The notes below the pieces were generated by a model. It was not told the DNA's origin and ran no database searches. It saw nothing but the letters and a program-made list of their open reading frames with translations. Shown one piece after another: positions 887-62,900 of a stretch of DNA of 64,000 nucleotides (position 1 is the first letter of the stretch; every line of letters begins with the position of its first letter). Position numbers and translations under genes: made by a program. The DNA comes from Podarcis gaigeae (Eukaryota), in assembly GCA_964106915.2 (NCBI GenBank), contig OZ066926.1. One strand, written 5' to 3'.

Positions 887-1174
887 CTTGCTGTTAGAAT
901 CCCACCGGAGCTTTGAGATCCTTGCTCTTCCACCGCACCTGCATCGCTTTCCTGCTTTTTATTCTTAGTTATCTCTCCTTTTTCTCTCGCTCCAACCTTC
1001 CAAGGGGTGGCTGGGAGTTGGGATGGGATGTCACCCGTTCCCTCTTTCTTAAGGGAGGGTATCTTCTTGAAGGGCCGGTGACTACGCGACCCCCAAGCGA
1101 CGATGGGTCTCTATCGCGGAAGGCCCCATTCAGAAGTTTGCTTCATCCAAAAAGTGGGAGAAGGAGAAGAAGAG

Positions 1175-1225
<51 letters not shown>

Positions 1226-2530
1226 TGAGAGGAGAAGGGGCTGCAGTCTTCTTCGAGGAGGGGGGACACGACAGAATGAAAGAGGGAGAAGGAGGGAGCT
1301 CTGGGAAGGGGGGGGGGGGCGACGAATGCAGCAGCCAGCCGCGGTTCTGTGGGGTGGGAGCAGGAGGGCGAGCTGGCGGTGGTCAATATGGAGCTGGGGG
1401 CCGGAGGAGCCGAGCTGGGGGGCCGGAAGAAGGAATGCAGCAGGAGGGAGACGGGGAATGACAGGATGAAAAAGGGAGCCAAGCGGACGAATGCAGCAGG
1501 GGGAAGAAGGGAGCGCGCGAGCAGACGACAGAACGAGGGACGCAGAAGGAGAGGAGGGGAAGAGGCAGAGGGGCGAAGAGAGGGGTGCAGGAGAGGGGGG
1601 AGGCGGAGGGGGGTTGGAAAGGGGTGCAGCGGATGGGGGAGGGGGACAGGGAAGCCCTCGAAGGGACGAAGGAATCGGGGACGCGGAAAAGGGGGAGAGA
1701 ATAGAAGAGGGATCCCGGCAGAAGGAGAGAGAGGGAAGGAAAGGAAGAGGGTCCGGAGGAGGAGGAGAGGGGAGTGCTATGGGGGGGGGGTGTTTCCAGG
1801 CAGGAGGCAAAGGACTGAAAAAGCCACGCAATGGCGAGAGGCTCGGGGGGGGGGGGTGGGCAAGGGAATGCAGCAGCAGAGAAAGGGAGAACGGGCGAGT
1901 GGGGAGCGATCAGAAATCGCAGCAGGAGGAAAACCCGTTTGGGGAGGGGAGTCAGGGAGCGCAGCAGAGATGCGGGTAAAAGAGGGAGGGGGATAATTAA
2001 ATCAATAAGTCCCAGTTGGGGGAAAGGAGGGTCTCCCTGAGCCAAAGATAGCCTCGTTATCTGGAGGGCGACCCCCAAAAGGGGGGGAGAGAAGGGTGGC
2101 TGTGCAGGGGGGGGGGATCGTTGGATGGAAAAAGAGAGCGGGCGAGGGGGGCTGCGGTGGAGGCGCGTCGGAGGAGGGAGGAGGAGGGAGCCCGAGAGAG
2201 AGAAAGGCTGCTACCGATTTTGTCCTGGGGGGCTTCGATCGGGCAGTGATGCCGCAGTCGGGTGCCGAGAGGTGGCTGCCTGTCTCTCGGTCCCCCTCCC
2301 TCCTGCTTTCCCCCTCTCTCCCTCTCTCCCTCTCACACACTCGCACACTCACACGCACGCACACAAACACACAGGCTGGCACGCACAGGGCGCCCCCGCG
2401 GCCGGATCCCGCACGATCACGGGATCTGCTTGGCTGGGAACTGACGAGGTGCGCGAGGAGAATTCACAATCGCCCCAGCCCAGCACACACACACACACAC
2501 ACACCCCAGCCCGGCTCCCTGCAGCTGGCC
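887..2530 (-). other. Putative long non-coding first exon (5' leader) of an unidentified minus-strand gene that continues off the left edge
   Basis: Strong minus-strand donor CAAG|GTGAGA (intron starts 886). CpG-rich, pyrimidine-rich leader on minus. The last ATG before the donor (MQVRWKSKDLKAPVGF*) stops before it. The 5' boundary is approximate. Confidence 0.5.
1177..1221. repeat. (GA)n microsatellite
   Basis: Direct read of the sequence. Confidence 0.95.
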
Positions 2531-2830
2531 GTGATGTCAGAGGGACCACTCTTAAAGGGACACAACGCCCCGGCTTCCCGCCCCGACCTCGCCAACCGGG
2601 GGGGAAGTGGGCTCGTCTGCTGGGTGGTGTGTGTGTGACAGAGAGAGACAGAAAGCGGATAGATCTGAATAGGAGAGGAACGCACACGACAGATAGCAAG
2701 CGAGCAGGATGTAGCGGTGAATATCCGAAACGTGGGGAATGTCGACATTCTCCACATGTCTGACACTCGCGGTAACATTCGCTCTGCCCGCATTCACATG
2801 TGTGTGGAGCGCGCGTGTGTTGGTCTAGAC
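2380..2830 (-). promoter_or_regulatory. CpG-rich promoter of the left-hand minus-strand gene
   Basis: High CpG density; minus-strand CCCTTTAAGAG (TATA-like) at ~2549-2559 followed by TGACATCA (CRE/AP-1-like) at 2532-2539. Confidence 0.45.
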
Positions 2831-4606
2831 TGTCGACAGTCAGATATAAAAATCAGCCTTCACCAAATTTCGGACAATGAGCTAGCCTGGATGTCTGCGT
2901 ATGTTTTGGTACACACACACACACACACCCCACAACACATACGTGTGCCTTAGTGCGGGCATCTGAGCCCAATACATTCACAAAACCGACCTGGGATTGT
3001 CAGCATTTCGTCTATGAAAGCGAAGAGCTAACCGATCTTTGGACAGTCATTGTAGTCTATGGAAGTGTTTTTTCTCTCTTGGTACCTGTCATATACAACA
3101 ACTATTATTACCATCATCATCATTATTACCTTTATCAGCACCACCAAAGATTCACAGCTGATGCTGCTGGGATAATGGCAAGTAAATACAGTTCGTTAAA
3201 AATGTTAATGATAACAAAGCCAGACACCCACAACTGGCACCTGCGCCAGAGCACCACCTTGTTTTCTGCACACCTCTCTGAAATGCACGTAAATCTCCTT
3301 CTCACCACCACGCGGGCGCGGAGTCCCCCCTGGTGTGAGCATCAGGATGGGTGGCGAATGGAGAAAAGAGGTTTTGTAATGAGCCTTCATACGAGGAGTT
3401 CCTAGGACTGGCCGTGAGGGGACTGAGCGTCGATGCTCTCTGGAGCCAGAAATCTTGAAAAGGGGAGGGAGATCTGGCTTGGTTTTCTTTTTTCCTTTTT
3501 GTAGTTTCGGTTCCTGAGGTCTCTTCGGAAGCTGAAGGGACTCCAGCCGAAGTCAGGAGGGACTCCTGGTCTCTCTCAATGAGAGCCTCGTTCAGTACAC
3601 AACAGAAGATAATCCTGTTGACCCACAAGAAATGACCCAATCCCATATTATGGCGAAACCTTTATCAGATCCTCATTGGATATCATGGCCTTATGAAGCT
3701 TATTGCCATAGTTATTAATATGAGTTTTGGTCACGTTGGAAGCTTTAGATTCCTTGGATCTCCTAGTGGTAATCTAGTGAGTTCACAGAACTGGGTTTTT
3801 GGGTTCCCTTGGTATGTGGAGGAAGTAAATGGGAAGAAACTGGGAGAGGAGCATCTGTAGACAACTGGGAGGCAAGAAACGAGCCAGCAGCTGTCATAGC
3901 TGAGGATGATGGGAGTTGTAGTCTCCAAAACATCTGAGGGGCACCTGGTTGCGGAAGCCTGAGTCACAGGAGAGACACATCAGTGGGTTTTAAAAATTTA
4001 TTGTTGTGATTTATTCATCACCTTCCGTACATGTCCCAAGGCGATGCACAAAATAGGATTGAAACAGCTAAATAGCAGTTACAAAAATAAACAGAAACAA
4101 TGCAGAATGAACACCGTATGGGAGACACTTATTCATCCAGCTGGGTGGAGCAAAAATGTCTTCTGGGGAAATGTAGAGAGTGGGCGCCTGGTCTATCTCA
4201 ACAGGGGGCGCTGTTCCACAGAGCAGGGGCAGCCACACTGAAACCCCCGGATACCTCAAAATTTATTGTTTGGAGCTGAGCTTCTGACCATTGCAGGAAA
4301 TAAGAGCCAGTGCTCAAGGAAAGTGGCAATAGGTAAAGGGCCCCAGAGGCTGATGGGAAGTGAGGGCCTGAGACAGTGGGAGCAAGCTGTAGGAGCTTGT
4401 GGGAACCTGAGGAGCAATGAAACTGATGAGGCTGGGTGGGAAGGAAGAAAGGGACTGAGACTCAGGTAGGCGCAGCTGTAGGGGTGAAGGAAGAAGGAGG
4501 GTCTGTTTCAACATTTCAGCATGCTTTAATCTGATCCTCTGTGTGTGGGAGTTAGGACTATTCAGGCCCCACACTTTGCACATGCTTAGAGGCACTCTTT
4601 TTAGTA

Positions 4607-24573: not shown

Positions 24574-26676
24574 GACCTGAGGTGGGAAGAAAAAAAAATT
24601 CCTGAAACCCTGGAGAGCCAGCCAGTACAGACAGTACTGAGCTAAATGGACCTGTAGTCTAACTTTTATCAGGCACTACGGCTACCTGTCATGGATGCTT
24701 CAATTGAGATTCCTGCATTGCAGGGGGTTGGACTAGATGGCCCTTGGTGGTCCCCTTCCAACACTATTATTCTATGATTCTGTCTTCCAGCCAAGAAGCT
24801 CAAATGCCTCCGTCATCCTACAAGCCCAGCAACCTCACCATCTGCCACCCAGCCTCTCCTCCTTTCTCTGAAGACACCCTTACTTTTCCTGCGAGAGAAA
24901 CTAGGTCAAGGAAAGATACCTCCTTTTGCAAATGACGTTTCGCACTTGTCACGGCTTGGGATCCTCATAGCAACAGCCGCCGTACTCTTGAGATGGCCTC
25001 CCCGCCCTCCGGCTCTCATCTCATCTGCACTTCCTGTATGCTCCAGCCGGGGGCAGCATTGTCTATCTGCCTGGATGTCTCGCATCCATGCGCATGTAGA
25101 CGGAAGGATATCAAATTGCTTGCAGCCCCCTTTTAAAAATAAAAATGCTTAACTATTTAACAAGCAATGCTTCGCGAAACAAAAACAACAACAACACACA
25201 CACTCCACCAATGTTTTAAGCAGCACTTCAGCTTGTGGTACATTATACTTTCGGAATTGACCGAAAAATAACAACAGTTAGATGAAATCATAGTTTAAAA
25301 TGATGTCCTTGTGTTCTCCTCCATCATCATCATCATCGTGTGCCAGCTGTGGAAGGACGTGGTAGGGTCTCCTTGATCACAAGCCCCCCAACAGTCGGCA
25401 TCGTGTGTGTGTGTGTGTGTGTGTTACTCCATCACATCAGACAAACGTGTTACTTTGGACAATGATTGCCTGCATCATTCCTGGTTAGAGCGCTGGGCTG
25501 GGGAGGCCCGGGTGGTCCCATCCCTTCTTGGATTCATGGCTTGCCTGGTGACTTTGGGACAGTCAGTCTCCTCGGCCTACCCCACCTCGCAGGGTTGCTG
25601 CGAGGATTAAATGGAGGCTGGTGGTTTCTATGTGTTCTGTCTGAGCTCCCTGGAAGAAGGATTGGATCAAAACGGAATGCCGCCCCCACTCTCAAAAAGG
25701 ATAGAAAGAAAAGTGCAGGGGCTTAAATTCTGTGACCTGGTTCCTCTCCTATGGTCAAGGGAAGCACTCGGCATGACCTCAGAGGCACTCTTTCTTCTTC
25801 AAATATCCCTAGGGTGTGAAGGTACGGAAAACTGGCAGCGGGTGTGGGGTCGGGAATGATTTCAAATATTTTCTAGGGCTAAGATCCTGTTCAGATTAAG
25901 CGCTGGCTGGATGGATGAGGCATTCATCATCATCATCATCATCATTCCACCCTTCACCCCAAGGTTCTGGTATCAGATGTGTCCGGGGTTAAATCTTATC
26001 CACCGCCCCAGCTGTCGCTCCCTTCTTAGATGCACGAAGAATCAGTAGTAAAGCGTTCTGCACATGCTCAGAGGCACCCTCTTGGCTTCACATATTATAC
26101 AGACGAGCCCTTGCATTGAAAAAAAATGGTTCTGGGGCGAAGGCTTCAATTTCATCCGATGCAGCCTTAAAACGGGGTGTGTTGGGGGGGTGGGCGTGCG
26201 AGCTCTCCGGCCACCCTCCGCCTGGCGTTCCTCCCCACCCGCGACCCTCCCTTTGCCCCACTCTCCCCAAAGCCCCGGGGAGCGTTGCTGCTCCTGCCGC
26301 CGCTGCCTCCGCGTGTGGTTATTGCTGTTTAGCATTCCATCACGCACTCGCTTCCGCCTAATCACTGCTAGGAAAGCGGTGCCTTTACCGGCAACTTCAG
26401 ACCTGCCAGGAACAGCTAACGGCCCTGACTGCGCATGATTAGCTCATAAACACCACCCAAGCCAGGAAGAGAGAGGGAGAGAGCGCAGGGCCAGGACGCC
26501 TGGGTTCTCTGGCCAGGGAGCGAGGGGTCCAGAGCGCTGCTGTGTCAGGATGCCGAGGCTCTCTCACCAAGGGGGAGTGGCGAGTCGCGGCCGGCTCCGT
26601 GGCTCCATTGGGGCGGGTGCCTTGAGGGGTGTGTGTGTACTGGATTGCTGTAAAATAGAGATACATCTCTCTTTCT

Positions 26677-26677
<1 letters not shown>

Positions 26678-26722
<45 letters not shown>
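26678..26722. repeat. (CA)n microsatellite
   Basis: Direct read. Confidence 0.95.
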
Positions 26723-26723
<1 letters not shown>

Positions 26724-28221
26724 ACTCTTCCCTGCCCCCAGCCATTGATATTGGTTGTACTGACTCCATTGTTTTCTACTGCACACACAACTGATCGGGG
26801 ATGGACAAGAGATATTGCAGCAGCAACCAGCACCTATTCTGCATCCCTGACGCAATGTGTATACTCATTAAGCTCACACTTCTGGGAGCTACTGTGAAAA
26901 GAAGGGAGAGTGCCAGTCGCTGTAACCATTAAGAGGGATTTGCAAACGACGAAGGATGTAAAAATGATCATTATACGTCAAGCATGCCACTTTTTGCAGA
27001 CTCATTCAGCACTGCATGCACACCTACATATAAACACATCTGCGCATGGGTAACATTGCCCATACAGACCCCACGTGCTCCATAAGCACTTGCCAGGATG
27101 CCATCGCAGTATACATTCAAAACAGGATATGTACATATAACACCATGTGTGCAAACTGTGTACACCACCCCAAAAATGTACACAGATACTGTACTGATGC
27201 ACACAATCATATTTGTGTGCGTGCTCCTCATGTGTCAGATACAGGGAGAGAAATAAACACACCCACATTGGGCATCATATATGAAGGCATTTTAATGCAT
27301 GTGCACACACCAAGGGGACACACACACATATGTACACCTTACATTGCAGTAATATGCACAGACAAACCATAGGTATGCCTTCGCAGTATTTACCCTTAAG
27401 GAATGATCCACCCAAAGAGACACACACAAATAAATAAATAGATACAAGACAGCACAGATTTATGCATGTCTACTCAGAAGCAAGTAAATGTGCATAGGAA
27501 TACAGCGCTATGCACACACTCAAGGGCAAATCCACAAGCTCCATGCACATGCCAATTTTGCACACGCATCCACCTATACATATGGCATGTCTGCACCTGC
27601 CCAAAATGTGTATATCTGGTACTGGTGTTACAATGGTTCTGTAAAATCGAGAGGTACAGTATAATAGAAATATATTAAATAAAACTAGCAAGTGCCCCCC
27701 ACCTATATATTGCCTTGATTTCTTTTTCACATTTGTATCATATCAGGGTGAAGGTGGCAGACATGAGACCGTTGCTTCTACATCACAACAGCCCTACAAG
27801 GTAAGTTACGAAGAACAGAAGAAACTGGCTTGCATAGAGTTGACCCACCTAGCCCAAGTGTAGGGCTGGGAGTGAGTGTCCAGGGTTTCAAACACAGGTC
27901 TCTCCCAGCTGTACCTGGAGATGGCAGGGGTTGAACCTGGGACCTTCTCAATGGAATGCATGAGCTCAGCCATGGAGCTTCAGCCCCTTCCTAAATTAGG
28001 CTCAAAATCAGCAACCAAACTAAGGATAATCTCCAAGCTCATTCCAACCCAGGTATCTCCCTGGCCCAAGTCCACCACTTGTGTGTAAGACTTGCAGCAC
28101 TATAATCCTATATCCAAAATCCACAGGATCAAACATAATGTTGCTGCATAGTGAGCAAGCTTTGGAGCATTTTCCGAACTCTTTCATCAACCTAGATGTT
28201 AGGCAGATAAAGGAATACAAT

Positions 28222-29599: not shown

Positions 29600-30999
29600 C
29601 CGGCTCTCATTGGATGTTCCTCTCCCTGTTCCGCGCACAAGAAGCTCTACCTACACCGCCTAATAGGTGCGCACGCACAAAAACTCCTGCTCCGTGCACG
29701 CGCGTCAGTGCAAACTGCCCATGTGCAGAGGGCAACCTCATGCGCAAAGTGAAGGCGGCGGGCGGGTGGCTGGAGTGGGAGCCGCCACGGGCCACTTGGG
29801 GGAAGGTTTTCCCACTTCGTCTCTTGGGACGCCCGGCCACGAGGGGGTTAACCGGGTCTCGCGTGGCTGTTGTTTTTTCGCTTTTCGGCCCGCGGGATCT
29901 CCCTGCAAGCCCCTGGATCACCTTACCCAACCTCTCTTCCCTCTTCTGCAGCAGGGATAGGCGGGGACCAGCTCGCTTTCCCCTCCTCCTTACCAACAGT
30001 CCCCTCCACACTTCCAGGAATCACCCAGGAAAAAAAAAAGGCAGGAGGGGGAGGGCGAGGGGGAGGGAGCCTAGCGGGGTTTACACAGCCACTTCCTGCC
30101 AATCAGGAGCCTGCCAGCCACCTCCGGCGGCCAATGAAAGTTCTGACCATTCATAAAAATAAATACTCTTGCCACACTCCACCCCAGCCACACACAGGCA
30201 CCAGGAATCCAAGCCTCTCTTCCCCCCAGCGTGTCAGTTTCCCCGTGAAACATACAAGCTCCTCTTGGAACCGGAGCAGCTCAAATATTATTCTTGTAGC
30301 TCTCGCTCTCTTTCCCGCCCTTCTCCATCCCTCCAGCTCCCAGCACGATGCAGCCAGCAGCAGCCACACGCTGACATGAGATGCGAGTTCACCGGCTCTC
30401 GCTCTCTTCCTCCTCCTCCCACCGCCGACCAGCCCCGCTTTACTCCGCTAACGGGAAAAGCGCTTCAGAAACGCGCGCGCACATTCACACGCACTTCCAG
30501 GAAACCAGAAAGACGCTGCGATTCTTGGCGAGAGGAAACGGATCGGTCGGCCTTTCTGCGCGTACACTCCTCCCCCCTCCTCCTCCTCCGCCCCGAGCAA
30601 CTTCCACCACTTTCGACTCCTCTTGAGTAGTCCTGATCCGGGAGGTATCCGGTGTGTGTGCCGGGGAGGGGAATGTGGGGGGGAGAGAGAGATTAATTGG
30701 CCCAGCCTGGGAACAAGCCTCCCATCCGGTGCGCCCCAGGCGCGCGGGGCGTTTGCAGACTCTGCTCGGCGCACCGCTTCCCCCTCGCGACCACAACCCG
30801 CCCCCCTCGCCGGCGTTGCAAGTATGGCAAAGGCAGGCGATCGGACTGGGCTCGGTTTCGGCAGAGGATCCCGCGAAGGGAAGAGCATTTTTAAATTTTG
30901 ATCCCCCCCCCGCACCCCACCCGTTTCCTCCCTCCCTCTCTTTTCTTCCACTCTTGGAGAGACACACACAGGCACCTCGCTGCTTTCACGCCGCCAAAG
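29600..30999 (+). promoter_or_regulatory. CpG-island promoter and non-coding exon 1 of the SOCS3-like gene
   Basis: GAS motifs TTCCAGGAA at 30012-30020 and 30495-30503; ETS CACTTCCTG 30090-30098; CCAAT at 30099 and 30131; CATAAAA 30152; consensus donor AAG|GTAAGT (intron starts 31000). TSS not determinable. Confidence 0.7.
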
Positions 31000-32776
31000 G
31001 TAAGTGAGTTTAAAATAACGACGACGGCGAGAGCATTAATAACCCCCATCCCACTCCCTGTTTTATATTGTTGGTGCCAGAAGTGGGGGGGGGGGGGACA
31101 GGGCTGAGATTGCAAAGGTGGGGAAGAAGACGACGAGAAGACAGGACCAGCCCGCCCAGAGCTAGAAGCGAGGAGTAGTCAGTGCCTGGGTAACTTTGGC
31201 TCCTGCAGTATTGTGGTGGTTTTCATGTCGGGCGCTACTCAGCCTAGGAGAAATAACTTTCTCCAAGTTTAATTTTGTTTCCTCGTCATAAAGGATTAAT
31301 TATCATGACGGTTATTAATTATTTAGGGAAATAAGGGGAATCCAGATTATAGGCAAAGCAGCACCGTGGTTTAGGTTGGGTTGGTTGGGGGTGGGGGTAA
31401 ACAAGGACTAGAATCTGTACAAATTGGAAATCTGACCAAAACAAAAAATCAAAGAAAATGCAAACTTCCAAAACATTTAACATTTTGGTTTTGAGAGCTG
31501 GAGGACATTAATGTTCTATCTTCGTGGCTGTTGTAATTAAAACAAAACAATATGCACAGCCAACTTGCTACATTCAGGATTTTTCCATTTCCACCACACA
31601 CGCCTTAAGAAAACCTAGTGGGATTGCGCAACTGGGAGTATTGGGAAGGAAGTGGAAAATCAGCAGGATTTTTAAATTCAGCTAACCCAACAGAAAATTT
31701 ATTTAGGAGCTAGTTTTCGAACCATAGCAAAACCTTGTTTGGAAGCCCCAGCTTATTTCCACATATTCCCCTTGTAAAGATGAACAGTGTTTCTTTGCTA
31801 TTTTGTGGAATTCTATCCCTAGTATCATCAACATCATCGTTATTTGTTATCGCCATCATCAAAATAGGTATTGATTGCCTTTCCGTAAAGCATCCTGAAG
31901 GCATTGTTGCTGCTTGAAAAATGAAGGAGACAATAACATGTAATTAAGAGCAGCGAGAAAAGGAGGGGCCTTTTGGGGTAAAGGCTGCAACTCAGAGGAA
32001 GAGCATCTACTTTGTGTTGCAAAAGGTTCCCTGGTTCAGGTGCGGCTGGGCATCTTCCGTGTCTGAAACCCTGGAAAACCACTGCTAATGGTGCTAATAC
32101 TGAACTAGACGGACTAATTGTCTGACTGTGTTTAAGGCTTTTTACTGTATTCCTACAGTCCAACCCAAGATGTGCATATTTAAGTCCTGTTTATTTAAGT
32201 GGAAAACTTATGCCCATGCTTAAGCCTTCCGTTTTAAATGTGATCCCCTTTTCTAAAGCCTTCAAGTCCAAAACGATTGCAAAAAAGTTTTGCTAACAAG
32301 AGAGAAAGAAAGGCAATGAGGTGTGGCCAGCTTGGCAGGGTGTTCTGCCATTGCGATGCCACTGTTGAGGAGACTCTTCCTTAAGTATAGAGGAAAAGGT
32401 GTGTGGGACTTGGAGTAAAACCGCCTTAGAAGATCACCGGTGCCAAGAATGCTCATATGTGCCTCTTGTTTATGGTTAACCATCAAGGACTTGATTTAAA
32501 CCCATGCAGAGGTTCAACAGGTAACCTCCACCAGGGGACCATTCTGCAGCTCCCCCCCCCCCCCGGGAGTGAATTGTCCAACTGCACCCAAGGCAGAAGG
32601 AAAACCCAGAGCGCCGACTCACACAGAGATATGACAGGCAACACCCATATGACATCTGCTCTTATATGACTGGAAGCTGCTAGTACAGGTGATCCAAGGA
32701 GGATTTCTCTCCTCCAGCAAAGACTGGAAAGCTAGAGCAGTGACTCACAGAGAGGCATCCTTATTGTGGATGGGTA

Positions 32777-33333
32777 CTAGATCAAGGGAAGTAATAGTGC
32801 CACTGTATTCTGCTCTGGTCAGACCTCACCTGGAGTACTGTGTCCAGTTCTGGGCACCACAGTTCAAGAAGGACACTGACAAACTGGAACGTGTCCAGAG
32901 GAGGGCAACCAAAATGGTCAAAGGCCTGGAAACGATGCCTTATGAGGAACGGCTAAGGGAGCTGGGCATGTTTAGCCTGGAGAAGAGGAGGTTAAGGGGT
33001 CATATGATAGCCATGTTCAAATATATAAAAGGATGTCACATAGAGGAGGGAGAAAGGTTGTTTTCTGCTGCTCCAGAGAAGCGGACACGGAGCAATGGTT
33101 CCAAACTACAAGAAAAAAGATTCCACCTAAACATTAGGAAGAACTTCCTGACAGTAAGAGCTGTTCGACAGTGGAATTTGCTGCCAAGGAGTGTGGTGGA
33201 GTCTCCTTCTTTGGAGGTCTTTAAGCAGAGGCTTGACAACCATATGTCAGGAGTGCTCTGATGGTGTTTCCTGCTTGGCAGGGGGTTGGACTCGATGGCC
33301 CTTGTGGTCTCTTCCAACTCTAGGATTCTATGA
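32777..33333 (+). mobile_element. CR1 LINE 3' fragment (ORF2 C-terminus), apparently young
   Basis: [43 protein letters not shown], open to the native stop; CR1 3' UTR ending GATTCTATGA. Confidence 0.95.
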
Positions 33334-36300
33334 CTTCGGGCTCACAAAAACAGTCAATCATTTACCGGTACTTTCTTTTTTTTATGGGGGGGAAAAAGAA
33401 CATAGGAAGCTGACCTATGCCTGGTCAGGCTTTTGATCCATCCAGGATGTAGATCTACCTACTGCCTTTCCCATCACCTGCTACCTGATGTTTTTAAGTG
33501 GGGGTCCAGGAGTTGACCCTGGGACCATCTCAATCCAAAGCTTCACCCACTGAGCCAATGTCCCCTTCCCCAGTTTCCTAATGGCAGGGCTTGCAGTTTC
33601 TTCATAGTGTTTGTTGCGCTTAGGTAATTTTAGACTCTGGACACTAATGGGCTTGCAGCCTGCCCCACTTTAGGCGGTCATGTGTTTTGCTTCCCTTTCT
33701 TCAGAATGTGGCAAGCCTTTCACCCCCTGTTCCTGCTGCCGAGGGAGACAGCTGGACCTCTGGCACAAAGACTTGCCCAATGGCAGCCACTGTTTGCTTG
33801 TGGCACCCAAGTTGGCAGGGACATTGATGGGCAACTTAACCGTTTCAAGGCCTGGACACAAAGGCAAATGTTAGCATAACATTTGCATGTGCTAATGTAT
33901 ATGTAAAGATGGGAACATCTCTAGGGATTGAATCTGATACTTTCTGCGGGTGCTCCAACCACTAAGCTGACAGACCTCCCCCCTTAAAAAAACCCAAAAA
34001 CCCACACACAGATTTCTCACCCAAATCATCCCAGATAAATTTTTCAGTTAATTTGGAGCAGAGGTTGCCTCTACTCAGTTCCTCTTCAGATTCATTTATC
34101 CCCATTGATTTCTCACAGCCCCTTCTCCAAATCAATTCTTTTTGCCCAAATCAACTCTAGATAAAGTAGTCTTAAATTAATTTATTTCCCCAGGTGAGTA
34201 TCCTACACAATAACCTAGAGCTCTCTCACACGCATGCATTCAATTTCCCTTGAATTCATTACCTGGCTAACACTAGGGGGCATTAGAAAAAGGTTGAACC
34301 CCCGTATCTCATGGGCCCACCTGTATCAACTCTACAGTTTGGGAATTACCAAATTCTCAATGTTTGTGTGTGGGTGTGGAGGTTTTATTTCTGCATCAGA
34401 ACCTTAACACAATTCTGCCAGCCTGTACAGGGTGCTTTGGTGCGGGGGTGTGTGTGATTTCTGCCTCAACTCAATTTTCCCCCAGGAAAGATTGGGAAAC
34501 AGGGTACTGTACTAGAATCCTGCTGCCACATCCAAGCTCGTGCATCTGAACAACAGAACTGTGCTCTAATGTAATATAAATCCCCACCCTCCCTCTCAGT
34601 ATTATTCACAGATGCCTCCTTTAAAAAATAAGAAGAAATTCCATATATTGTTTAATTTTTCTGGAGTAGCATTCGCCACGTCGATTCTGCTGTGGGAATG
34701 AAGGCTTCCAAAAGCACTTTTCTGGCAGAGGTTCTTTGTAAACACTGGCATAGCATAGCTCCCCCCCCTCAAAGCAAGTTAACCACACCCATCCCAGTTA
34801 GTCTCCTCCCCCTAACTTTTGCAGAGGGCCTTGGGAAGCAGCTACAGTGGGATGATAAGATCTTCCAAGATGGTGTTCAGCAGCAGAATGGTCACTGCAG
34901 CCTGATGTGTTCTTGGGGCTGTATCACTTCAGTATCGAGGCAGGAGGAATTGAACGATGGAGAGTTTTCTCTTGCACTTTGGCCATGGAAGCTAGTATGT
35001 TGGGGGAATGATTCTTGATTTCTGTATGCAGGGATGTTTTGGTGTGGGGAAACTTGTCAAATGTGCAGCCTTCAGCTCCCAGTGGTACAGTCTTGAGGAG
35101 GCTTTACCAGGCGGAGCCTGCATATTAGCTCTAAAACGGGGGTTCAGACCTTGTTGTTGCTTTCTATGCTCACAAGCAGATACGCATCAGGTGAAGTTTC
35201 CCTATCGCTACAGCTCTCTCAAGGAAAAGCATCACCTGTTGAATTTCTGCCCACACACAGCTTGCAGAGGTATATGATGCCTACCAGAGGGGAAACAAAA
35301 AATATGGCAAACCCTGGTCTAGGCCATACTTGAGTAGTCTACGAGTCCTTATTATAGGAGACTATCAGGAGGTTCAGACCTAGAGGGCACCAGCATATAT
35401 TGTTCTGAGATGGGCAACAACTTTGGGGTTCTTAATGTGTGCAGTTTGCAAATCCGTGGGAAATCCTAGACAGCTGGACAGTTCAAATTACTTGAGAATG
35501 TGCAATGAACATAACAGTGACTCCTTTCCAAAGTGACAAAAAAGGTCTTTGCTTCCGCTTTCCCAAGAAGTAGGGAGTTGCAGGGTATGTTTTCTTTTAA
35601 TGAAATATCAGCTACAAAGGCTTTGCAGCAGGTGTTTACTTATAAAAAGACAAAAACATTTTGGGAGCAAACAGGCTTATATTTATCAGGCCCGGAAGTG
35701 CTATTTTGGGTAGTAGACTCTCAAGGTGGTACTAGGTGAACAGCTACAGCCCACCCCAAGACTTCACTGCCAGCTCTGTGAGATTCCTTGTATGACTCCC
35801 TATCTCCACCCCAAACTCTGGTGGGTGTTGCATTCCAAAGGAAGGAGAGTTTTCCATCCATCAAGGATCAGTATGCTGTTTTGACTACCATAAGTGCCTC
35901 ATACAAAATCGTTTTATGACCAGTCATATCCATATCACTAAATGTTTAGCACATTTAAAACACCTGCCTTTCCCCAAAGAATCCTGGGGACTTTGGGGGA
36001 AGCCACCTGTTGAACGGCTGTAAATATGCTTTAAACGTATGGTGTTAGATGTGATGTCAGTAGAGGGATTTGAACCCAACTCTTGCAGGTCTGAATGCAT
36101 TGAAGCAGGCCTGGTTCTAGGATAAATAGCACCCTGGGGTGAAGGATGCCTGCAGCAGTCCCCTCTGTGGCTGGTTTTGTAGGGTTGCCAAGTTATGTAC
36201 CTTGTGCAAGGTTGCAAAACCCGACGGTATAACATGCCCTTGTTGCTCCCAGGCGTTCCCAGAAATGCTCATGAAAAGATCCCGGAGCTACCTGTCAATG

Positions 36301-36694
36301 ATTTTGCCCCAGCAGTGTAGACAGAACAGTCAACAAACTCTGAACTTAGCTGGACAATCACACACACACACACCCCTTCTTCAGCTTGGCACCCAAGGAG
36401 AGCAACAGAGCTCATCCACCACTATGTTTGAGCTACAGCCATTCGTTCCAAGTAATCACACAACCAGATCTGCTGCGAGATCAATCAGTCTTCTATGCTT
36501 CTGTCCAGTTTAGTAACAGGAAAAGCTTTGGAGATGTGTCAGCAGAACAAGGTGGGAGAGGGGTGAGGCAGTGGAAGGGAGAGTACCACTGTACACTGCA
36601 GATAAGAGGTTCCTACAAGAGCATCTTCTCAACACTTCGTCCCTGCAGCCTGGACTATGATACAGTGGGGGAAATATCATTGCTTCTTAGAATG

Positions 36695-37005
36695 ATGGGA
36701 TTGTAGAGTTGGAAGGGACCTCAAAGATGATCTCTGCAATGCAGGAATATCTGCTAAAGCATCCACCCAGCCTCCACTTAAAAACCTCCAAGGAGAGTCT
36801 GCCACCTTCCAATACAAGGGAGTCTGTTCCACTGTTGAACAGTGCTTGGTGTTAAAAAGTTCCTCCTGTAGAGTCAGGATCTCCTTTCTTGTCACTTGAA
36901 TCCACTGGTTCCAGCCCTAATCTCTGGAGCAGGAGAAAACGAGTTTGCTCCATCTTCCATGTTAACAGCCCTTTAGATATTTGAAAATGATTATCATATC
37001 TCCTC
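36695..37005 (-). mobile_element. Degenerate CR1 3' fragment
   Basis: Reverse complement of CR1 end motifs (GTAGAGTTGGAAGGGACC; TATTTGAAAATGATTATCATATCTCCTCT). Confidence 0.65.
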
Positions 37006-37986
37006 TGAGTAGAACTGAGTTGGATACAAGTCATTGATTTTAATGGGTGTATCTGCTGTATGACTAATTGGATATCACTCAGGATCCTAATATGTCCTCC
37101 CTGCTTTGATATCTGGGCACCCAAATTTGCCTTTGTTCTTCTGGGTATAACTTTCATGAATGATTCCCATAGTGGCAAAGATTTGTGCAAGAGCTGAGTT
37201 TGCTCAATCATAGCTCAACATACACTGGACAACATAGCTAAGGCTTCCTGCAAGAAGTTGAAAGCTGTGAAGTCAAGTGCTCTGACAAGCTTGGCGTACC
37301 GGAATGTCAACACAACATCCTTGGTTTGATCTGGTCAGCCAAAGAGGTTTTTTTCTGCCCCCACCCCCCAAGGCCTTACCAATTTTGATGACGTGGCAAA
37401 AAAATAAAAATTAGGTAGAGCACTAGAGTGAGCAGAGAGACCTAATGCCCTGCTTAGGTTGCAAACCACCTCCTGCCCAGTTGGCAGATTGATCTGGTGG
37501 CCACAACCTCCCATCTCAGCTGAACTGCATGGAGTTGCAAGTGTGTGAGGTGGCCACACACACCACTGATGGAACAACACCTGGAAGTTTTTGGCCAAGG
37601 GTGAATGTGGCTCTCAAACCAAAAAAAGCTCTGCTTTGGATAAAATGCCAAAGCTACTTTTCAAACAAACTTTGCTAAACCTGCTTTGTTCAGTCATGCC
37701 GCTCCAAGATCTTTCACAGCAAATGCACAGGAATAATATCAAGCATTTTTAGTTAGCGTGTCTCCATTTAGGCGCATATTGAAATAGAGCTATTTCCCAA
37801 GTTTCTTGGTTCTGCTTTTATGCCTTGTCTCGAGCAAAGAAGACGTGAGTCCAGGGGAGAGACCTGCACCTTTCAGCTGGAGTTTGAAAGCCTGCAGGCT
37901 CCTGCTGCATGAACCGTCTCTGTCTTCCTTTTCAGATGCTGCTCCGGTAACCGACTGAGCGTCTCTCCCGGCCAACTGGAGGCGCA

Positions 37987-38601
37987 ATGGTCCCCCTGTG
38001 CTGGTGCTGCCCGCCAGCACCTGCACCAGCTGCGGCGGCCATGACGGGCACGGCCACAACCTCCTACCACTTCAAGAGTTTCTGTGGGGAGTTTGAGCGG
38101 GTGGAAAGCGCCCTGGAACGCCTCGAGGCCAGCGGCTTCTACTGGGGCAGCCTGTCTGGGGCCGAAGCCAAGCGCCTTTTGACCTCCCAGCCGCCCGGCG
38201 TCTTCCTCGTGCGAGATTCTTCCGACCACCACCACCTCTTCACCCTGAGCGTCCGCACCAACACGGGCATCACCAACCTGCGCATCCAGCAGCAGGGCTC
38301 AGCTTTCCACCTGGAGGCCTTGCCAGGCGCTGGCCACCCCCCGGCCTTCCACTGTGTGGTCCGGCTAGTAGAGCACTATCTGTGCCTGGGAGCAGTAGAA
38401 GGGGGCCCCTGCTACCTGGAGAGGGAGGGGCAGCCCCCAGTGCCTTTGGCCCTCACCCATCCTCTCTGCTGCAAAGTGCCCACCTTGCAAGAGCTGAGTC
38501 GCCGGGCAGTGCGTGCCAGTATGAGGGGCAGAGGCGATGCCAGGGCTCAGCTGCAGGGGCTGCCAGTACCGCAGGGACTCTTGAACTCGCTGTGCACCTG
38601 A
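37987..38601 (+). CDS. Suppressor of cytokine signalling 3-like protein (divergent SOCS3 paralogue), 204 aa, single coding exon
   Basis: KIR-like YHFKSF; ESS helix; SH2 with GFYWG, FLVRDSS, FTLSV, NLRIQ and FxCVxxLVxHY (SOCS3-type); PLxLxxPL; SOCS box TLQELSRRAV...LPVP. Acceptor TTCCTTTTCAG at 37935; Kozak GCAATGG. Confidence 0.92.
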   Translation: MVPLCWCCPPAPAPAAAAMTGTATTSYHFKSFCGEFERVESALERLEASGFYWGSLSGAEAKRLLTSQPPGVFLVRDSSDHHHLFTLSVRTNTGITNLRIQQQGSAFHLEALPGAGHPPAFHCVVRLVEHYLCLGAVEGGPCYLEREGQPPVPLALTHPLCCKVPTLQELSRRAVRASMRGRGDARAQLQGLPVPQGLLNSLCT

Positions 38602-38699
38602 AAGGCTCTTTTCCTTCCTAACATTCCTTGTACAGTACATAAGCAGGCCTGTCTGCACAGTGTATTGCTGGGGGCGCCTGTTTATCATTATATTTGTGG

Positions 38700-38705
38700 A
38701 ATAAA
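38700..38705 (+). terminator. Polyadenylation signal, SOCS3-like gene (first candidate)
   Basis: AATAAA ~100 nt after the stop codon. Confidence 0.55.
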
Positions 38706-40952
38706 CCAACTGGTATACTGGAGGGAGCCATCTCTTCATTCATCAAAAGCCTTCAAATTCATTCTGATGCTCTCAAGATGTCAAGTATCACCAGAAGCAG
38801 AGAAAACGAAAAAAGCTGCCTATTCCAGGGCCTGGGTGGGCTTGTAACACAAGCTCCCATCTCAAAAGCACATCCAGAGAAAGGTATAAAGAACTGCTTT
38901 TGGGAGGAGTTGCATCCTTGCAGGTTCACACTTGTAATCTTGATGGCCTAAGATGTAACTGTTGCCCTAGACCAGGTAAGAGTTCTCTTCTTCACCAGAA
39001 AGTCACTAGGAGATGCACTGCTCAGTGTTAAATGAGGGGTAGATGCAGTAATCTAGCAACAATCAGAAGTGTAGTAATTTTGTCAGAATAAACCAGTCTT
39101 CTAGGTGTGAGCAACCTCCGTTCCTTCAGATGTTGAACTAAAAGCCCCCTCATCCCTGACCACTTCTCATGCTTGTTGGGCTGATGGGAGTTGCAGGTCA
39201 GCCACATCTGAAGGGACAAAAGTTCCCCATACCTGTTTTAATGTGCCACAAGCCAAGGTTCTTAAAACGTTTAGCTAGAAATTGTGCACTATGCTACAAA
39301 TGAGAAGCCCTTGCTTCCCATAGTGTGTGGGGAAGGATGTGGGCATTCCATGACCAAGGAAAAGGCATTCTTTGTACAAACTGGTGTTGTTGCAAAGGGA
39401 TCCTTCTCCCACTCGCTTTTCATGTTTGACCACCACATCCCATTTTTCTACACGTGACACAAATCTTTCCAGTCACTGCCCTAAGGGCAGGTCATTACTG
39501 TAACTTGACAGGCCTCGAGAATGTTGACACAGGAAACTAGTTGTTGAGAGAACGACGTTTTGAGGCAAAAAGAAAGTACAAGCTCAGCTAATCTGATGCT
39601 GCATCTGGCGACTCTTTAGCTTGTGTATGTTTTCATAAACAGCCTGGTGTGTGCAAAGGCCATGTCACTGGGGAGCCTGGAAGAGCAGAGGGGGGCACAG
39701 ATCTGCAGCAGTGTTTAAAGAAAGCAGTGACTTCTAGTTTATTACTAGGGACTAGGCTATACCAGTGAGCATATATGCTCAACACTTGCCATGCACTCAA
39801 ACCCTGTACAAACCAGCAGGAACAACCTGCCATACCAGATGTGTTAAAGCTTTAAAACAAAAAAAGAAAATCATTTTAGACAAAGCTACCTTTGTCTAAA
39901 ACTGCACCTGACCAATTAATAATTGAAGTTAATTTTTGTATCCTGTGCTGTTCCAGTTTACCTGAACGTTAATTCGAGCCACCCTGCTCCCATTTAAATC
40001 AACTGCAGTCACAGGTTGTCTGATTTCAATCTTATTCTAGGGTTGTAGATTCTCATTTCTTGTTGGCAAGCCAAATCTCTTACTGGAAACTCTGGGAGTC
40101 CCTGCCAATTTGTCTCCAAGGCGAGGTGACTCAGAGCTTCAAGCTGCTCTGATAAAACTTGGAAGGCTAATTTAACTTCAACTTCTGTTTGCTTGGAAGT
40201 CTCCTTAAAAGCAATGAGACACAGCACACATGGGAGGTGTATGCAAAGTTGGCACCCAAAGCGCTCAATTATGCTCCCGGACCCCAAATCTCTCACTTTT
40301 CCACCTGCCATCTGTTCCTGTAGATTTGCCTCCGGGAAAGATCCCAACTTGTTTCCTGCCAATTTCTTTACTCATCGCTCACCTTTATGCTATTTTCAGC
40401 AGCGATCGTTTCCATCTACTGGAGATAAGGATTGCAATTCAGCTATACATATATGCATGCTAATTCCAGGAATAATCCCCCTTGAGTGTACAGAAAAACA
40501 AGGGGTAGTATTATGGGTCCAGGGAATGAATGACCCAGGCAGCCACTGGGAATGGCCTCTCCTCTAGATTTGTTTTGACTTTCCAAGGCAAGGGGGAGGG
40601 GGTTGGCAGAAGACAAAAAACAACTGCTCCTTGTTTTTGGACCCTTCTGTGTGCAATGGAGTCAACCATTTCATAGATGGAAAAGAGGCGTGTATATGTT
40701 AAGAGTACAGTATTGGCCTCAAATGCACTGTACCCTCCTCAGCCACACTCCACTACTAGCCCCATTCCCAACCAACAATTGGCTGCTGCTCCTTCCTATG
40801 CAGATGTCCTGTTTGCTAGGAACCAACCTCAACTGAGTTGCTCATTCGAACAGAGCGCCCCATGCGAGATCACTTGTTGCAGGTATTATCAGGTATTTTT
40901 GAGATGCACCCCCGACACTAGAAGGGCTACAATATTTTATCCACAAATATTT

Positions 40953-41230: not shown

Positions 41231-42141
41231 TTACAGACGTTCCAGCTAAACCCGGCAGCATTCTTCTTAAGAACGGTTTTTCACAGAACTAGAAAGCTAA
41301 AGTGATTGACGGAAGAGAGCCAAGTGAGGAATCAAGTGATCACCCCCCAATTCCAGCACTCAGGGAGCTTAAAATTTAAAAGCTCAGCGTTTGGGAACAT
41401 GGACATTAACATCCTGCTCCTATTATCAAAGCCAGGGTTAACCTCAGCCCCTTCCTTAATTAACACTGCAATGAATTCCTAAACATGATACTCAGAACTA
41501 AGCCCCACCATTCAGTAGGCTTTTCTTACACATTAATAAGTGTTTTACAATACAACTCAATGCAACTATGCCCTCACAACTTCTTACTCGCAAACTGCTC
41601 ACAGAACAAAGGTTCAGAACCAACCAACAGGAAATGCTTGGGAGAAACTGACTCAAGTTTGACATTTACTGCTGCTGCCCTCAGTATACAATGGCAAGAT
41701 GAATGCCTGGTTATCCTGAAAACTGGGTGTAACAGCAGACAATTTGCTAACGAGGGATAACATTAACACTTTGTGCCAAGAAGGAGCAGAGTTGCTAGTT
41801 GTTACCTCTACTGCCCACACGCCAAGACCTTCGCAAGGTGTACGGCTGAGCCGCAGTGAACCTTGCCGAAATTGTTGGTGCTTTTGGCATACAGCCTCAT
41901 TAGGCAGACTGCAGGGCTTTTAGGTTATCCAGGGTTCCAGTCCATGGGAGGGATTGGTGGGGTAAAAAGACACACGGCTGGGACATGTCCACACATCTCC
42001 CTGCACAGGCCACACATAAGAGACATCAGATGCATTACTTCAGAGGTAGACCCTGTCTTTACAGCCCACAGCAACTCAGTCATTGCTTCTGGCTTCTGCT
42101 TAAGTGAAATGCCATTTCTAAACATACTCCAAGGCAACCTA

Positions 42142-59394: not shown

Positions 59395-59528
59395 ATGGCT
59401 TGTCCCAAGGCCGGGCTCCCCTGGCCCCTCCCTATGCTGTGGTCCTGATCTCCTGCTCAGGCTTGCTGGCCTTTATCTTCCTCCTCCTCACCTGCCTGTG
59501 CTGCAAACGGGGCGATGTGGGGTTCAAG
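59395..59528 (+). CDS. LMTK3: LMTK3 exon 2 (transmembrane segment)
   Basis: [44 protein letters not shown], the LMTK3 signature sequence. Confidence 0.95.
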
Positions 59529-60054
59529 GTGAGCCTGGTTGTGGGGATTTGAGGTTGGTCATGGAATGCTTTGGGGAAGGGATGTTGTTGTTATTTGCTG
59601 AAAGGCATTTGTGGCTTGTATTCTGTGAAGCTAAACAGCATCATGGTTTGAAGTGTACAGTTTCCTAAGCAAAACCTATAGCCCTCCCATTAGTCCCTGA
59701 AGGTCAGGGATGATGGGAGGGACACAAGTTCCCCATCCCTCATGTTGGTGAGAAGACCTTGTACCAGCGGTTAACCACATTGGGCATTTCCTGTGGGCCC
59801 CATTACTCTAAAGTGCTCCTCGCCAGCCTGATCTGCTGCCCACTAGCTCACCATTGGGTCCAGCTCCACCCCATAGCAGTTGGCTAGCAACCTCTACCTC
59901 CTTGCTTGGGCACTGAGAAGGGGGCCAGAGGGTCCTTCTTCTCAGATTCTGGCCTTCTTGGTGAGATGGCTAGGCATTGCCTGCGCTAGTGCGGTTTGCT
60001 GTGATAGCTAAAAAGGCTTTTGAAAATCATTCATTTTTTTGAAAAAGTTAATAA

Positions 60055-60187
60055 TCATAGACTTGTACAGTTGGGTCCAAGAGAATTGTCTAGCCCAACT
60101 CTCTGCAATGCATGACTCTTTTGCCCAAAGTGGGGCTCAAACCCACAACCGTGAGATTAAGAGTCTCATGCTCTTATTAACTGAGCC
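60055..60187 (-). mobile_element. tRNA-Lys-derived SINE with CR1 tail
   Basis: Reverse complement of GCTCAG..GAGCATGAGACTCTTAATCTC..GGGTTTGAGCCCCAC plus CR1-like tail. Confidence 0.65.
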
Positions 60188-60699
60188 GCAAGAGTAGAAA
60201 GGAGCGCCAAAGGTCAGTCCTCTGTGTTTAAAAAGTCTTTCGAGCCGCCATGGCAAACCACAGAAGTGACGGCAGAGGCATTCTCCAGGCCACCACATCA
60301 CCAAAATGCTTGTCTCTATAAAGGATGTCTTTGGCCCTTTCTCAGAGCCCAGGTGCTGAGGGAGGTGCCAGCGAAGCTGTTATTGTAGCCGTGAAGAATG
60401 TTTTTAAACAGGATTAAGAGAGACGTCAGGGCGGAAGGGAAGAGGAGGGCGGCAGTGTTGTCCCACAAAGGGGAATATCAGGTGCAGCAGGGGTAACTCT
60501 GATGATGGTGGTGTTGCATTGGCCATGCCAAGGTCCCCATTAAACCTGGCACCAGCCCTGTTGGTGGGTTCTGACGCTTGGGGATGGCAAGGCCATGGGG
60601 AAACACTGAGGTTGCTAATTCAGGCAACAGACTGGGAAATAATGGGGAAACCAGCAGAATATCTTATCATCCTTACACTCCCCTCTGCCCACCTGGCAG

Positions 60700-60850
60700 G
60701 AATTTGAGAACCCTGATGGAGAAGAATATTCTGGAGAATACACACCACCTGCAGAGGAGACGTCCTCCTCTCAGTCTATCCCGGATGTCTACATTCTGCC
60801 TCTCTCAGAGGTCTCTCTCCCATCCTCCAACCAGCAGATGCCCAAAACAG
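60700..60850 (+). CDS. LMTK3: LMTK3 exon 3
   Basis: [50 protein letters not shown]; CAG / GTAAG. Confidence 0.95.
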
Positions 60851-61728
60851 GTAAGATTCATTGGAGAGGGCATGCATGCACCTGCCTGTCTCTTTATTTG
60901 CTGATTTGCTACTGGGTTAGGTTCAAGGTACTTGTGTTTATCCACAAAGTCCTAAACAACTTGGGCTCAAAGTGCCTTGGGGACCACCTGATTCCTCATG
61001 CTCCACCTTGATCACTGGGATCCTCTGATGGGGCCCTTCTGGTGGCTCCCCATGGCCCTAAGGATCAGTTGGCCATCTCTAGGTCCCAGGCCTTTTGTAT
61101 GGCAGACCTTGCCCTGTGGAACTGCCTACAAATGGAGGCTTGGCAGGAACCATCCCTCTCTTCCTTCAGACGTCGTTTGAAAACTTTTTCTTTTACAATA
61201 TTCCCCCCTCCCCTCATAGCCAGCCAGTATTTATTGATATTTATTGCTGTTATTATGGCTCTTCTGATTTTACCTTTATATGTGTACTCCGCCTAGTTCT
61301 ATTTTTATGGAAGTGTGGATTGTAAATTTGTAAAAATAAACAAACAAATCCCACACCAGCTTGGCCCCATATAGATGGGGAGCTTTTGGTCCTTCAGACC
61401 CTGTTGAACAACAACCTCCGCCAACCCTGGCCATTTTCTGTGTTTGCTAGGGCTGATGGAAATTGTAGTTCAGCAACATTTGGAGGGCCAAAGGTTCTCC
61501 ATTCTTGCCCAGAATGATAGGTGGCCTACAAAGGGAGAAGCAGCGCTCATTATATTTGCCAGGAAGGTGATACCATCCTGCCCCATCAGCTGCTGCTGCT
61601 AGCTTATGTTCCAGTAGCTTGTCTATTAACTTTTGAATGTGGGGGGAAACGAAGTTGGGAGGTTCATGCTCAAGTCATTGGGTCATGACATTGACTTCTG
61701 TTACTGCCACGCTCTGTCTCTCTTTCAG

Positions 61729-61805
61729 ATCTAGTTAAACACTTGGGACTCAGCAGACAACACCTCAGTTATTTGCAGGAGATTGGAAATGGCTGGTTTG
61801 GAAAG
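61729..61805 (+). CDS. LMTK3: LMTK3 exon 4 (kinase Gly-rich loop)
   Basis: [25 protein letters not shown]. Confidence 0.95.
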
Positions 61806-62781
61806 GTGAGCAAAAGCTTGTTGTTGGGGATGTGATTTTTGTTGTGGGACCCAAGGTTCTTTCCTGCGGGCTCCAGTTTTATTCTCAGGGAATATGAAGA
61901 GCCACTGTAAGTTTAAAAATAGCAATAATTTGAAATATTATTATGCAGCTAACAACAACAGAGTAACAGGACACTTATGTAATGCAGATGCACAAAATGA
62001 AACAACAGTAAATAAAACAACAACCATGGTTACATCCACGCCATATATTTTAAAGCACATGGCTTCCACCAAAGGATCCTGAGATGTGTAGTTTGTTAAG
62101 GTTGCAGGGAATTGTAGCTCTGTGAGGGGTAAACGACAGTTCTGCAGATTCTTATGTCCTTTAAATGTGCGTTAAATGTTCTCTAACTGTGTAGTGTGGG
62201 TGTGACCAGTCAATTGCACAATACAGGAAAAATAAATAAATCTCAATATTGGGTGGAAAGGATAAAAGAAAACCTACAGCCATCTTACATTTAAATAACC
62301 AGGATCGAGAAGGTCCTCTCTCTCCAGTTGCCACCTGCCTAAATTTAGATTAGAGGGACATAGAGAGAAGCCTTCAAAAATGAACAGAAGGTTCAGTGAG
62401 TAAAAGGCAGTATCCGGACACAAAGCTGGGTAGGGCTTTATAGGTAATTATGAATTACCTTTGAATTGTGCCCAGAAATGAACTGGCAGTCAGAGTGGCC
62501 CTGTAACAACTGGCGAGATGTGTTTTGTTTAGTTGGTTCCAGGCTGCATACATATCCCTGGCTTAAATCGCTGCCAGGTCATTCTTTTTCTGAACTCTGA
62601 AGCTAGTTTGGAAGAGGAAAAAAAATGGATGTGCAATGTTTCATAAGAAATGACAGGATAGATATGGATCATGGCCAATGTCGTGTGGACACCGCTTCCC
62701 TAAACCACTGGTAAGATCACACTGGATGGGAGCGTGTGTTCACAACTCTGGTTAGTAACTGTTTCCCCCCCTGTTCCACAG

Positions 62782-62900
62782 GTAATCCTGGGTGAAATAT
62801 TCTCAGATTTCACCCCTGCACAGGTTGTAGTGAAGGAGCTACGGGTGAGTGCTGGGCCACTGGAGCAGAGGAAATTCCTGTCAGAGGCCCAACCATATCG
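62782..62900 (+). CDS. LMTK3: LMTK3 exon 5 (catalytic Lys, alphaC)
   Basis: [39 protein letters not shown]. Confidence 0.95.

Follow-up and report, generated by a model that had tools for sequence, protein, structure and literature searches.

A SOCS3b-type gene beside RPS9 in the lizard Podarcis gaigeae: transcript structure, lineage and a proposed mode of action

Gene structure, transcription and genomic neighbourhood

The window considered here is a 64-kb stretch of DNA from the lacertid Podarcis gaigeae (64,000 nucleotides, zero N). It carries on its plus strand a two-exon gene, for which the name SOCS3b is used below, with RPS9 and LMTK3 as its downstream neighbours. The features lying outside the coding sequence are as follows.

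30008..30024, + strand: conserved 17-mer containing the predicted distal STAT-type (GAS) element TTCCAGGAA at 30012-30020
30495..30503, + strand: proximal STAT-type element TTCCAGGAA
30874..30999, + strand: non-coding exon 1, minimum extent given by the 5' end of contig X1; donor at 31000
31000..37935, + strand: single intron, GT...AG, 6.9 kb
37936..38716, + strand: exon 2, with 5' UTR, whole coding sequence and 3' UTR (contig X1; runs X23 and X24)
37936..37950, + strand: 4-codon upstream open reading frame (uORF), its start coinciding with that of exon 2; putatively translated
38700..38705, + strand: polyadenylation signal AATAAA
40930..45452, - strand: RPS9, tail-to-tail with SOCS3b
59395..62900, + strand: LMTK3, four coding exons, 21 kb downstream of SOCS3b and continuing past the window end

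Reads and contigs from close relatives were mapped onto positions 33700-39400. One of these contigs, X1, spans 37934-38716 at a depth of 423, compared with 3-8 for pieces within the intron, and terminates 11 bases beyond the polyadenylation signal, at 38716. Its loose 5' end of 124 letters matches window positions 30968-30997, directly before the GT donor at 31000, indicating that exon 1 is spliced to exon 2 across the 6.9-kb intron; the RNA status of X1 is a guess, although DNA would not be expected to show a spliced joint. Exon 2 is also covered by two RNA-seq runs at a depth of about 1-6, and the first mate lies on the minus strand for almost all of these reads, which in most stranded libraries points to RNA of the plus strand. 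SOCS3b is transcribed and spliced as a two-exon mRNA. The original prediction had proposed a non-coding exon 1 followed by a single coding exon; the layout is confirmed by X1 together with the donor at 31000, and expression is supported by X1 and the two runs.

Exon 1 is situated in a CpG island, the observed/expected CpG ratio being 0.72-0.75 at 29-31 kb of the window. Further CpG-rich stretches occur at 1000-3000 and about 26000-27000, where a crude scan revealed no coding exon. Two repeat-derived segments were observed in the intron. A reverse-transcriptase 3' fragment at 32689-33333, which resembles a CR1-type LINE, coincides at 32778-33333 with an alignment gap in Zootoca, which points to a recent insertion or deletion at this place, while a repeat fragment at 36690-37000 attracts many partial reads from elsewhere and is not an exon.

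Upstream of exon 1, the distal 17-mer is identical in the window, Zootoca, python, gecko and green turtle, with its 9-mer core kept in alligator, and the proximal element is kept in Zootoca, python and gecko. Since the pattern TTCCAGGAA is marginal by count alone (4 matches in the window against 1.5 expected), it is conservation rather than the number of matches that provides the evidence for STAT-type elements, and this conservation suggests STAT-driven feedback. No STAT element was found within 10 kb of Xenopus SOCS3b. The uORF is likewise found again at the corresponding position, where it comprises 4 codons in Zootoca, python and gecko and 8 in turtles and alligator, and short uORFs are also present in Xenopus SOCS3b.

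The tail-to-tail arrangement with RPS9 is shared by Zootoca, python, gecko, green turtle, alligator and caecilian; in Xenopus, RPS9 was not found within 10 kb of SOCS3b. For one of the LMTK3 exons, the sole PDB match is LMTK3 itself (E 2.9e-17). The interval between SOCS3b and RPS9 contains a further TTCCAGGAA match at 40464 and two short non-coding blocks (39467-39542 and 40055-40183) that are conserved in python and gecko and represent possible regulatory elements. The last RPS9 intron holds another block conserved in python and gecko (41775-42030, minus strand), whose core of 45-48 bases (41822-41872) is kept in alligator and turtle. At the green turtle locus, large minus-strand gene models with Ig domains span the SOCS3b-RPS9 pair and probably result from the merging of models in a leukocyte-receptor-like cluster alongside.

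Coding sequence, lineage and distribution

The coding sequence is an uninterrupted open reading frame of 204 codons, which can be divided into the following segments.

37987..38601, + strand: SOCS3b coding sequence, 204 aa
37987..38010, + strand: Cys-rich N-terminus (Cys5, Cys7, Cys8), candidate S-acylation site
38041..38043, + strand: second in-frame Met (Met19), in a nearly invariant alignment column and aligned with the second Met of SOCS3
38065..38085, + strand: kinase inhibitory region (KIR), residues 27-33 (YHFKSFC)
38086..38136, + strand: helix of the extended SH2 subdomain (ESS), residues 34-50, aligned to the SOCS3 ESS; helix at 36-49 in a low-confidence model
38137..38379, + strand: SH2 domain, residues 51-131, with invariant phosphotyrosine-binding Arg76 and with Leu84 at 38236-38238
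38476..38592, + strand: SOCS box, with BC box and LPVP Cul5-box motif, C-terminally shortened

An intact 204-aa protein with the order KIR-ESS-SH2-SOCS box had been predicted and is present, and an in-frame stop 39 bases 5' of Met1 rules out a longer N-terminus. The domain order characteristic of the SOCS family, an SH2 domain followed by a C-terminal SOCS box, is recovered by Pfam, with SH2 (PF00017) at residues 51-131 above the cut-off (E 7.9e-13) and SOCS_box (PF07525) at residues 164-199 barely above it (25.5 bits; cut-off 23.5). Among solved structures, SOCS3 ranks highest for the window protein (119.8 bits), followed by SOCS2 (82.8) and SOCS1 (69.5). The structure prediction, made with 24 sequences, reached a mean pLDDT of 46, which is too poor for a fold search. 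The SOCS3-like SH2 motifs quoted in the original prediction were found in the protein, as was the strong divergence from canonical SOCS3 that it described, with identities of 38-39% to frog SOCS3 and 42% to cod SOCS3a. Among its close relatives, the protein is 99.5% identical to those of Podarcis muralis and Lacerta agilis, and NCBI already holds an identical protein (P0081). Pairwise dN/dS values of 0.07-0.24 among reptiles (every p < 1e-4), far below 1, demonstrate purifying selection. Mean column identity across SOCS3b proteins is highest in the KIR (0.90) and decreases through the ESS (0.86), SH2 core (0.84) and BC box (0.76) to the Cul5 box (0.65).

The N-terminal segment has characteristics of its own. 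Of the SOCS3b proteins included in the count, 85 have 3-4 Cys within the 32 residues preceding the KIR, and the segment between the two Met starts contains zero lysine; that the Cys cluster is an S-acylation site is a guess. In mammals, SOCS3 has an alternative start at Met12, yielding a shorter isoform (PMC6593527). The annotated alligator SOCS3b of 189 aa begins at the second Met (locus L003, 9944-10000) and is probably short, as an in-frame upstream Met with a Cys-rich segment exists there.

The lineage to which the gene belongs has a published counterpart. Wang, Wangkahart, Secombes and Wang reported in 2019 that coelacanth, amphibians and reptiles possess a '2R vertebrate SOCS3b', which is the sister of SOCS3, is distinct from teleost socs3b and shares about 35-41% identity with canonical SOCS3 (PMC6368001). 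The accessions in Fig. S25 of that paper include python XM_007439874, anole XM_008118448, coelacanth XM_006000626 and Xenopus NM_203661, and the homologue clusters of the window protein include XP_007439936, XP_008116655, XP_006000688 and NP_988992 from the same species, XM/NM and XP/NP entries having been paired via RefSeq numbering, species and name. The window gene also displays the layout regarded as typical of SOCS3b, in which the last of two exons alone is coding.

In a maximum-likelihood tree, the window protein grouped with published SOCS3b and shark proteins (clade support 98/95), canonical and teleost SOCS3 formed a separate clade (100/99), and the sister relation between SOCS3b and SOCS3 received 92/86 in this tree without jawed-vertebrate SOCS1. 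A word search that used teleost SOCS3 as its seed listed exclusively fish proteins among its best 120 matches, the tree is without lizard canonical SOCS3, and the alignments exclude five mammal-type SOCS3 representatives of possibly human origin (P0241, P0244, P0248, P0255 and P0336). The gene is almost certainly SOCS3b, a duplicate of SOCS3 that predates the split between sharks and bony vertebrates, and the vertebrate genome duplications are the most likely mode of its origin. The ancient paralogue postulated in the original prediction, together with its suspected assignment to a SOCS3b-type lineage, is corroborated by the tree and the accessions. The lineage is not new: it was published in 2019 (PMC6368001), and dozens of genomes already carry an annotation of the gene.

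It is barely credible that the window gene is instead the lizard's only, fast-evolving SOCS3, a retrocopy or a decaying pseudogene. NCBI does call some SOCS3b orthologues plainly 'suppressor of cytokine signaling 3', but the SOCS3b clade has been separate since sharks, which speaks against a canonical SOCS3 identity, as originally predicted, and the canonical features of SOCS3 (position in the SOCS3 clade, BC-loop Phe-Phe and a D-x-P-[LIV] C-terminus) are lacking in the window protein. Moreover, both genes occur in the same species, the frogs Hyperolius and Aquarana each carrying one gene in each of the two clades, and canonical SOCS3 is reported alongside SOCS3b in anole (PMC6368001). A retrocopy, against which the original prediction had argued, and a pseudogene are ruled out by the intron and its splicing, the intact reading frame and the dN/dS values, in addition to which the poly(A) signal and conserved synteny speak against them. 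An orthologue of teleost socs3b was also considered and rejected, teleost socs3b falling inside the SOCS3 clade.

Homologues labelled 'SOCS3-like' were found in squamates, turtles, alligator, frogs, newt, caecilian, coelacanth, lungfish and five sharks. The extra gene attributed to reptiles does occur in them, but its presence in sharks, coelacanth, lungfish and amphibians indicates that it is not reptile-specific. Word searches gave zero SOCS3b matches in birds, mammals and ray-finned fish, in agreement with the lack of a human counterpart predicted earlier, and in an exhaustive profile search no more than two 50% clusters (one turtle-led, one shark) scored in the range of SOCS3b before the drop to SOCS3; this search, which reports clusters without their members, rules out another, strongly diverged one. 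A loss in birds is unsure, because turtle SOCS3b has a coding-sequence GC3 of 0.98, LMTK3 has in the past been counted as a bird loss, and the chicken has CACNG7 on chr31, one of its dot chromosomes. The presence of SOCS3b in sharks gives it an age compatible with whole-genome duplication. Aatk, Lmtk2 and Lmtk3 form a vertebrate-expanded trio; RPS9, LMTK3 and CACNG7 are presumably located on human 19q13, and the paralogues AATK and CACNG1/4/5 presumably on 17q24-25 near SOCS3, an arrangement with which the RPS9/LMTK3 neighbourhood fits an origin by genome duplication. In lampreys and hagfish, at least three divergent SOCS1/3-like lineages were observed (P0245, P0247, P0256, P0277 and P0360), which group firmly with neither SOCS3 nor SOCS3b; for a lamprey SOCS1-like query against the PDB, SOCS1 was not among the matches displayed.

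Inhibitory surface and proposed mechanism

The KIR of SOCS1 functions as a pseudosubstrate in which the last Phe, Phe58, is essential (PMC5908791). In SOCS3b, the essential Phe is represented by the invariant Phe32, and the hydrophobic P+1 residue by Phe/Tyr29. The BC loop has a different character. SOCS1 Phe112 stacks on the glutamine of the JAK GQM motif, and its mutation, with the replacing residue not stated, raises the IC50 2000-fold (PMC5908791), whereas SOCS3b has no aromatic residue here, Leu84 (matching SOCS1 Phe112 and SOCS3 Phe79) being present in 106/106 proteins. The equivalent residue is Phe in all teleost (120/120) and frog (14/14) SOCS3 sequences and Leu in SOCS2, invertebrate SOCS and 2/10 divergent teleost SOCS3 representatives, the last of which indicates that Leu is tolerable at this position. 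Asp77 and Phe85 of SOCS3b correspond to SOCS1 Asp105 and Phe113. The original suggestion of an extra direct JAK inhibitor is plausible given the conserved KIR, although Leu84 speaks against it.

The conserved KIR, its SOCS1-like residues, Leu84 and the changes in the SOCS box together favour, as a reading that is somewhat probable, an inhibitor that is induced by STAT, docks on a receptor and uses its KIR against JAK, with lower affinity or a narrower choice of kinase than SOCS1 and SOCS3. Cytokine-activated STAT would bind the promoter elements, as their conservation suggests; the two-exon mRNA is made; and the uORF and second Met may tune the amount and form of the protein. The SH2 domain, with Arg76 intact, would dock on a receptor phosphotyrosine, and the KIR would enter the substrate groove of the receptor-bound JAK, with a weaker affinity or a narrower JAK choice expected from Leu84 in place of the GQM-stacking Phe. 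More speculatively, the Cys cluster of the long form might tether SOCS3b to the membrane and compensate for the lower affinity. SOCS3b probably still binds Elongin BC, and its recruitment of Cullin5 is probably weak. No biochemical or functional work on SOCS3b was found in the literature beyond PMC6368001.

An action like that of CIS or SOCS2, in which the SH2 domain blocks receptor phosphotyrosines and Elongin BC-Cullin5 degrades the receptor without direct JAK inhibition, would accord with Leu84, the state of SOCS2 and invertebrate SOCS, and with the LPVP motif in reptile copies, a motif of this type being needed for tight Cullin5 binding (PMC5908791). This is nevertheless unlikely, as the KIR is more conserved than either the BC box or the Cul5 box, and the SOCS box itself has been altered: most frog copies have LPVS or similar, neither an Arg two residues past the motif nor the aromatic residues of the C-terminal end are present in SOCS3b, and the precomputed Pfam SOCS_box is missing for most amphibian copies. 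The lacertid BC box, for its part, has Ser171 in place of Cys. The strong conservation of the KIR alongside an invariant change at the GQM-stacking position, together with a Cys-rich N-terminus missing from SOCS3, could also be accounted for by an active KIR that is anchored at the membrane through the Cys cluster and aimed outside JAK1/JAK2/TYK2, at JAK3, which lacks the GQM motif, or at a receptor tyrosine kinase. Such retargeting is quite improbable, given that the other GQM-facing residues, Asp77 and Phe85, are kept and that the Leu shared by the two teleost SOCS3 representatives is tolerated there. Doubtful to a slightly greater degree is the idea that SOCS3b constitutes a third distinct KIR-bearing SOCS, lipid-anchored and inhibiting a kinase beyond the reach of SOCS1 and SOCS3 (e.g. 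JAK3), which, if true, would represent a layer of cytokine control lost by mammals.

Significance and comparison with known systems

As a discovery, lizard SOCS3b matters little. Its interest lies in being a natural variant of the SOCS1/SOCS3 inhibitory surface, in which a SOCS1-like KIR is combined with a SOCS2-like BC-loop Leu; this pairing, unchanged from sharks to lizards, makes it possible to test directly which features turn a SOCS protein into a JAK inhibitor and how this ability evolved. For reptile and amphibian immunology, naming also matters, as annotations apply the label 'SOCS3' to two distinct genes and the name socs3b denotes another gene in teleosts.

Teleost socs3b, also called SOCS8, has only the name in common with SOCS3b. 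It is a fish-specific (3R) duplicate of canonical SOCS3 and falls within the SOCS3 clade, both in the present tree and in PMC6368001. SOCS2 and CIS resemble SOCS3b in the combination of SH2 domain and SOCS box, the BC-loop Leu and the LP-hydrophobic-P motif, but have no KIR and group in a clade of their own.

SOCS1 (PDB 6C7Y; PMC5908791) provides the closest parallel in the KIR, its His54, Phe55, Arg56, Thr57 and Phe58 corresponding to His28, Phe29, Lys30, Ser31 and Phe32 of SOCS3b. It differs in scoring lower than SOCS3 (69.5 against 119.8 bits), in having Arg59 and Phe112 where SOCS3b has Cys and Leu, and in having IPLN in place of LPVP. Canonical SOCS3 (SOCS3a; PDB 4GL9 and 2HMH) is the best structural relative by sequence and shares the KIR-ESS-SH2-SOCS box order, the two Met starts, a STAT-type promoter element and the two-exon layout. 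Unlike it, SOCS3b has His-Phe/Tyr rather than Arg-Leu in the KIR, Leu for Phe79, a Cys-rich N-terminus without Lys6, no C-terminal tyrosines and a long intron. The long PEST insert of canonical SOCS3 is also missing; however, frog SOCS3 is short there as well and shares the LP-hydrophobic-P motif, so neither trait can be regarded as a speciality of SOCS3b.

With respect to the 2R vertebrate SOCS3b of PMC6368001, 'SOCS3-like' at NCBI, the available portion of that paper does not analyse the synteny, promoter, residues or function of this gene and records one SOCS3 in elephant shark. New here are the extension of SOCS3b to elasmobranch sharks, which do have it, the tail-to-tail arrangement with RPS9 from caecilian to lizard with LMTK3 nearby, and the conserved STAT-type element, short uORF, second Met and Cys-rich N-terminus. 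In kind, the window gene is no different from that published lineage.
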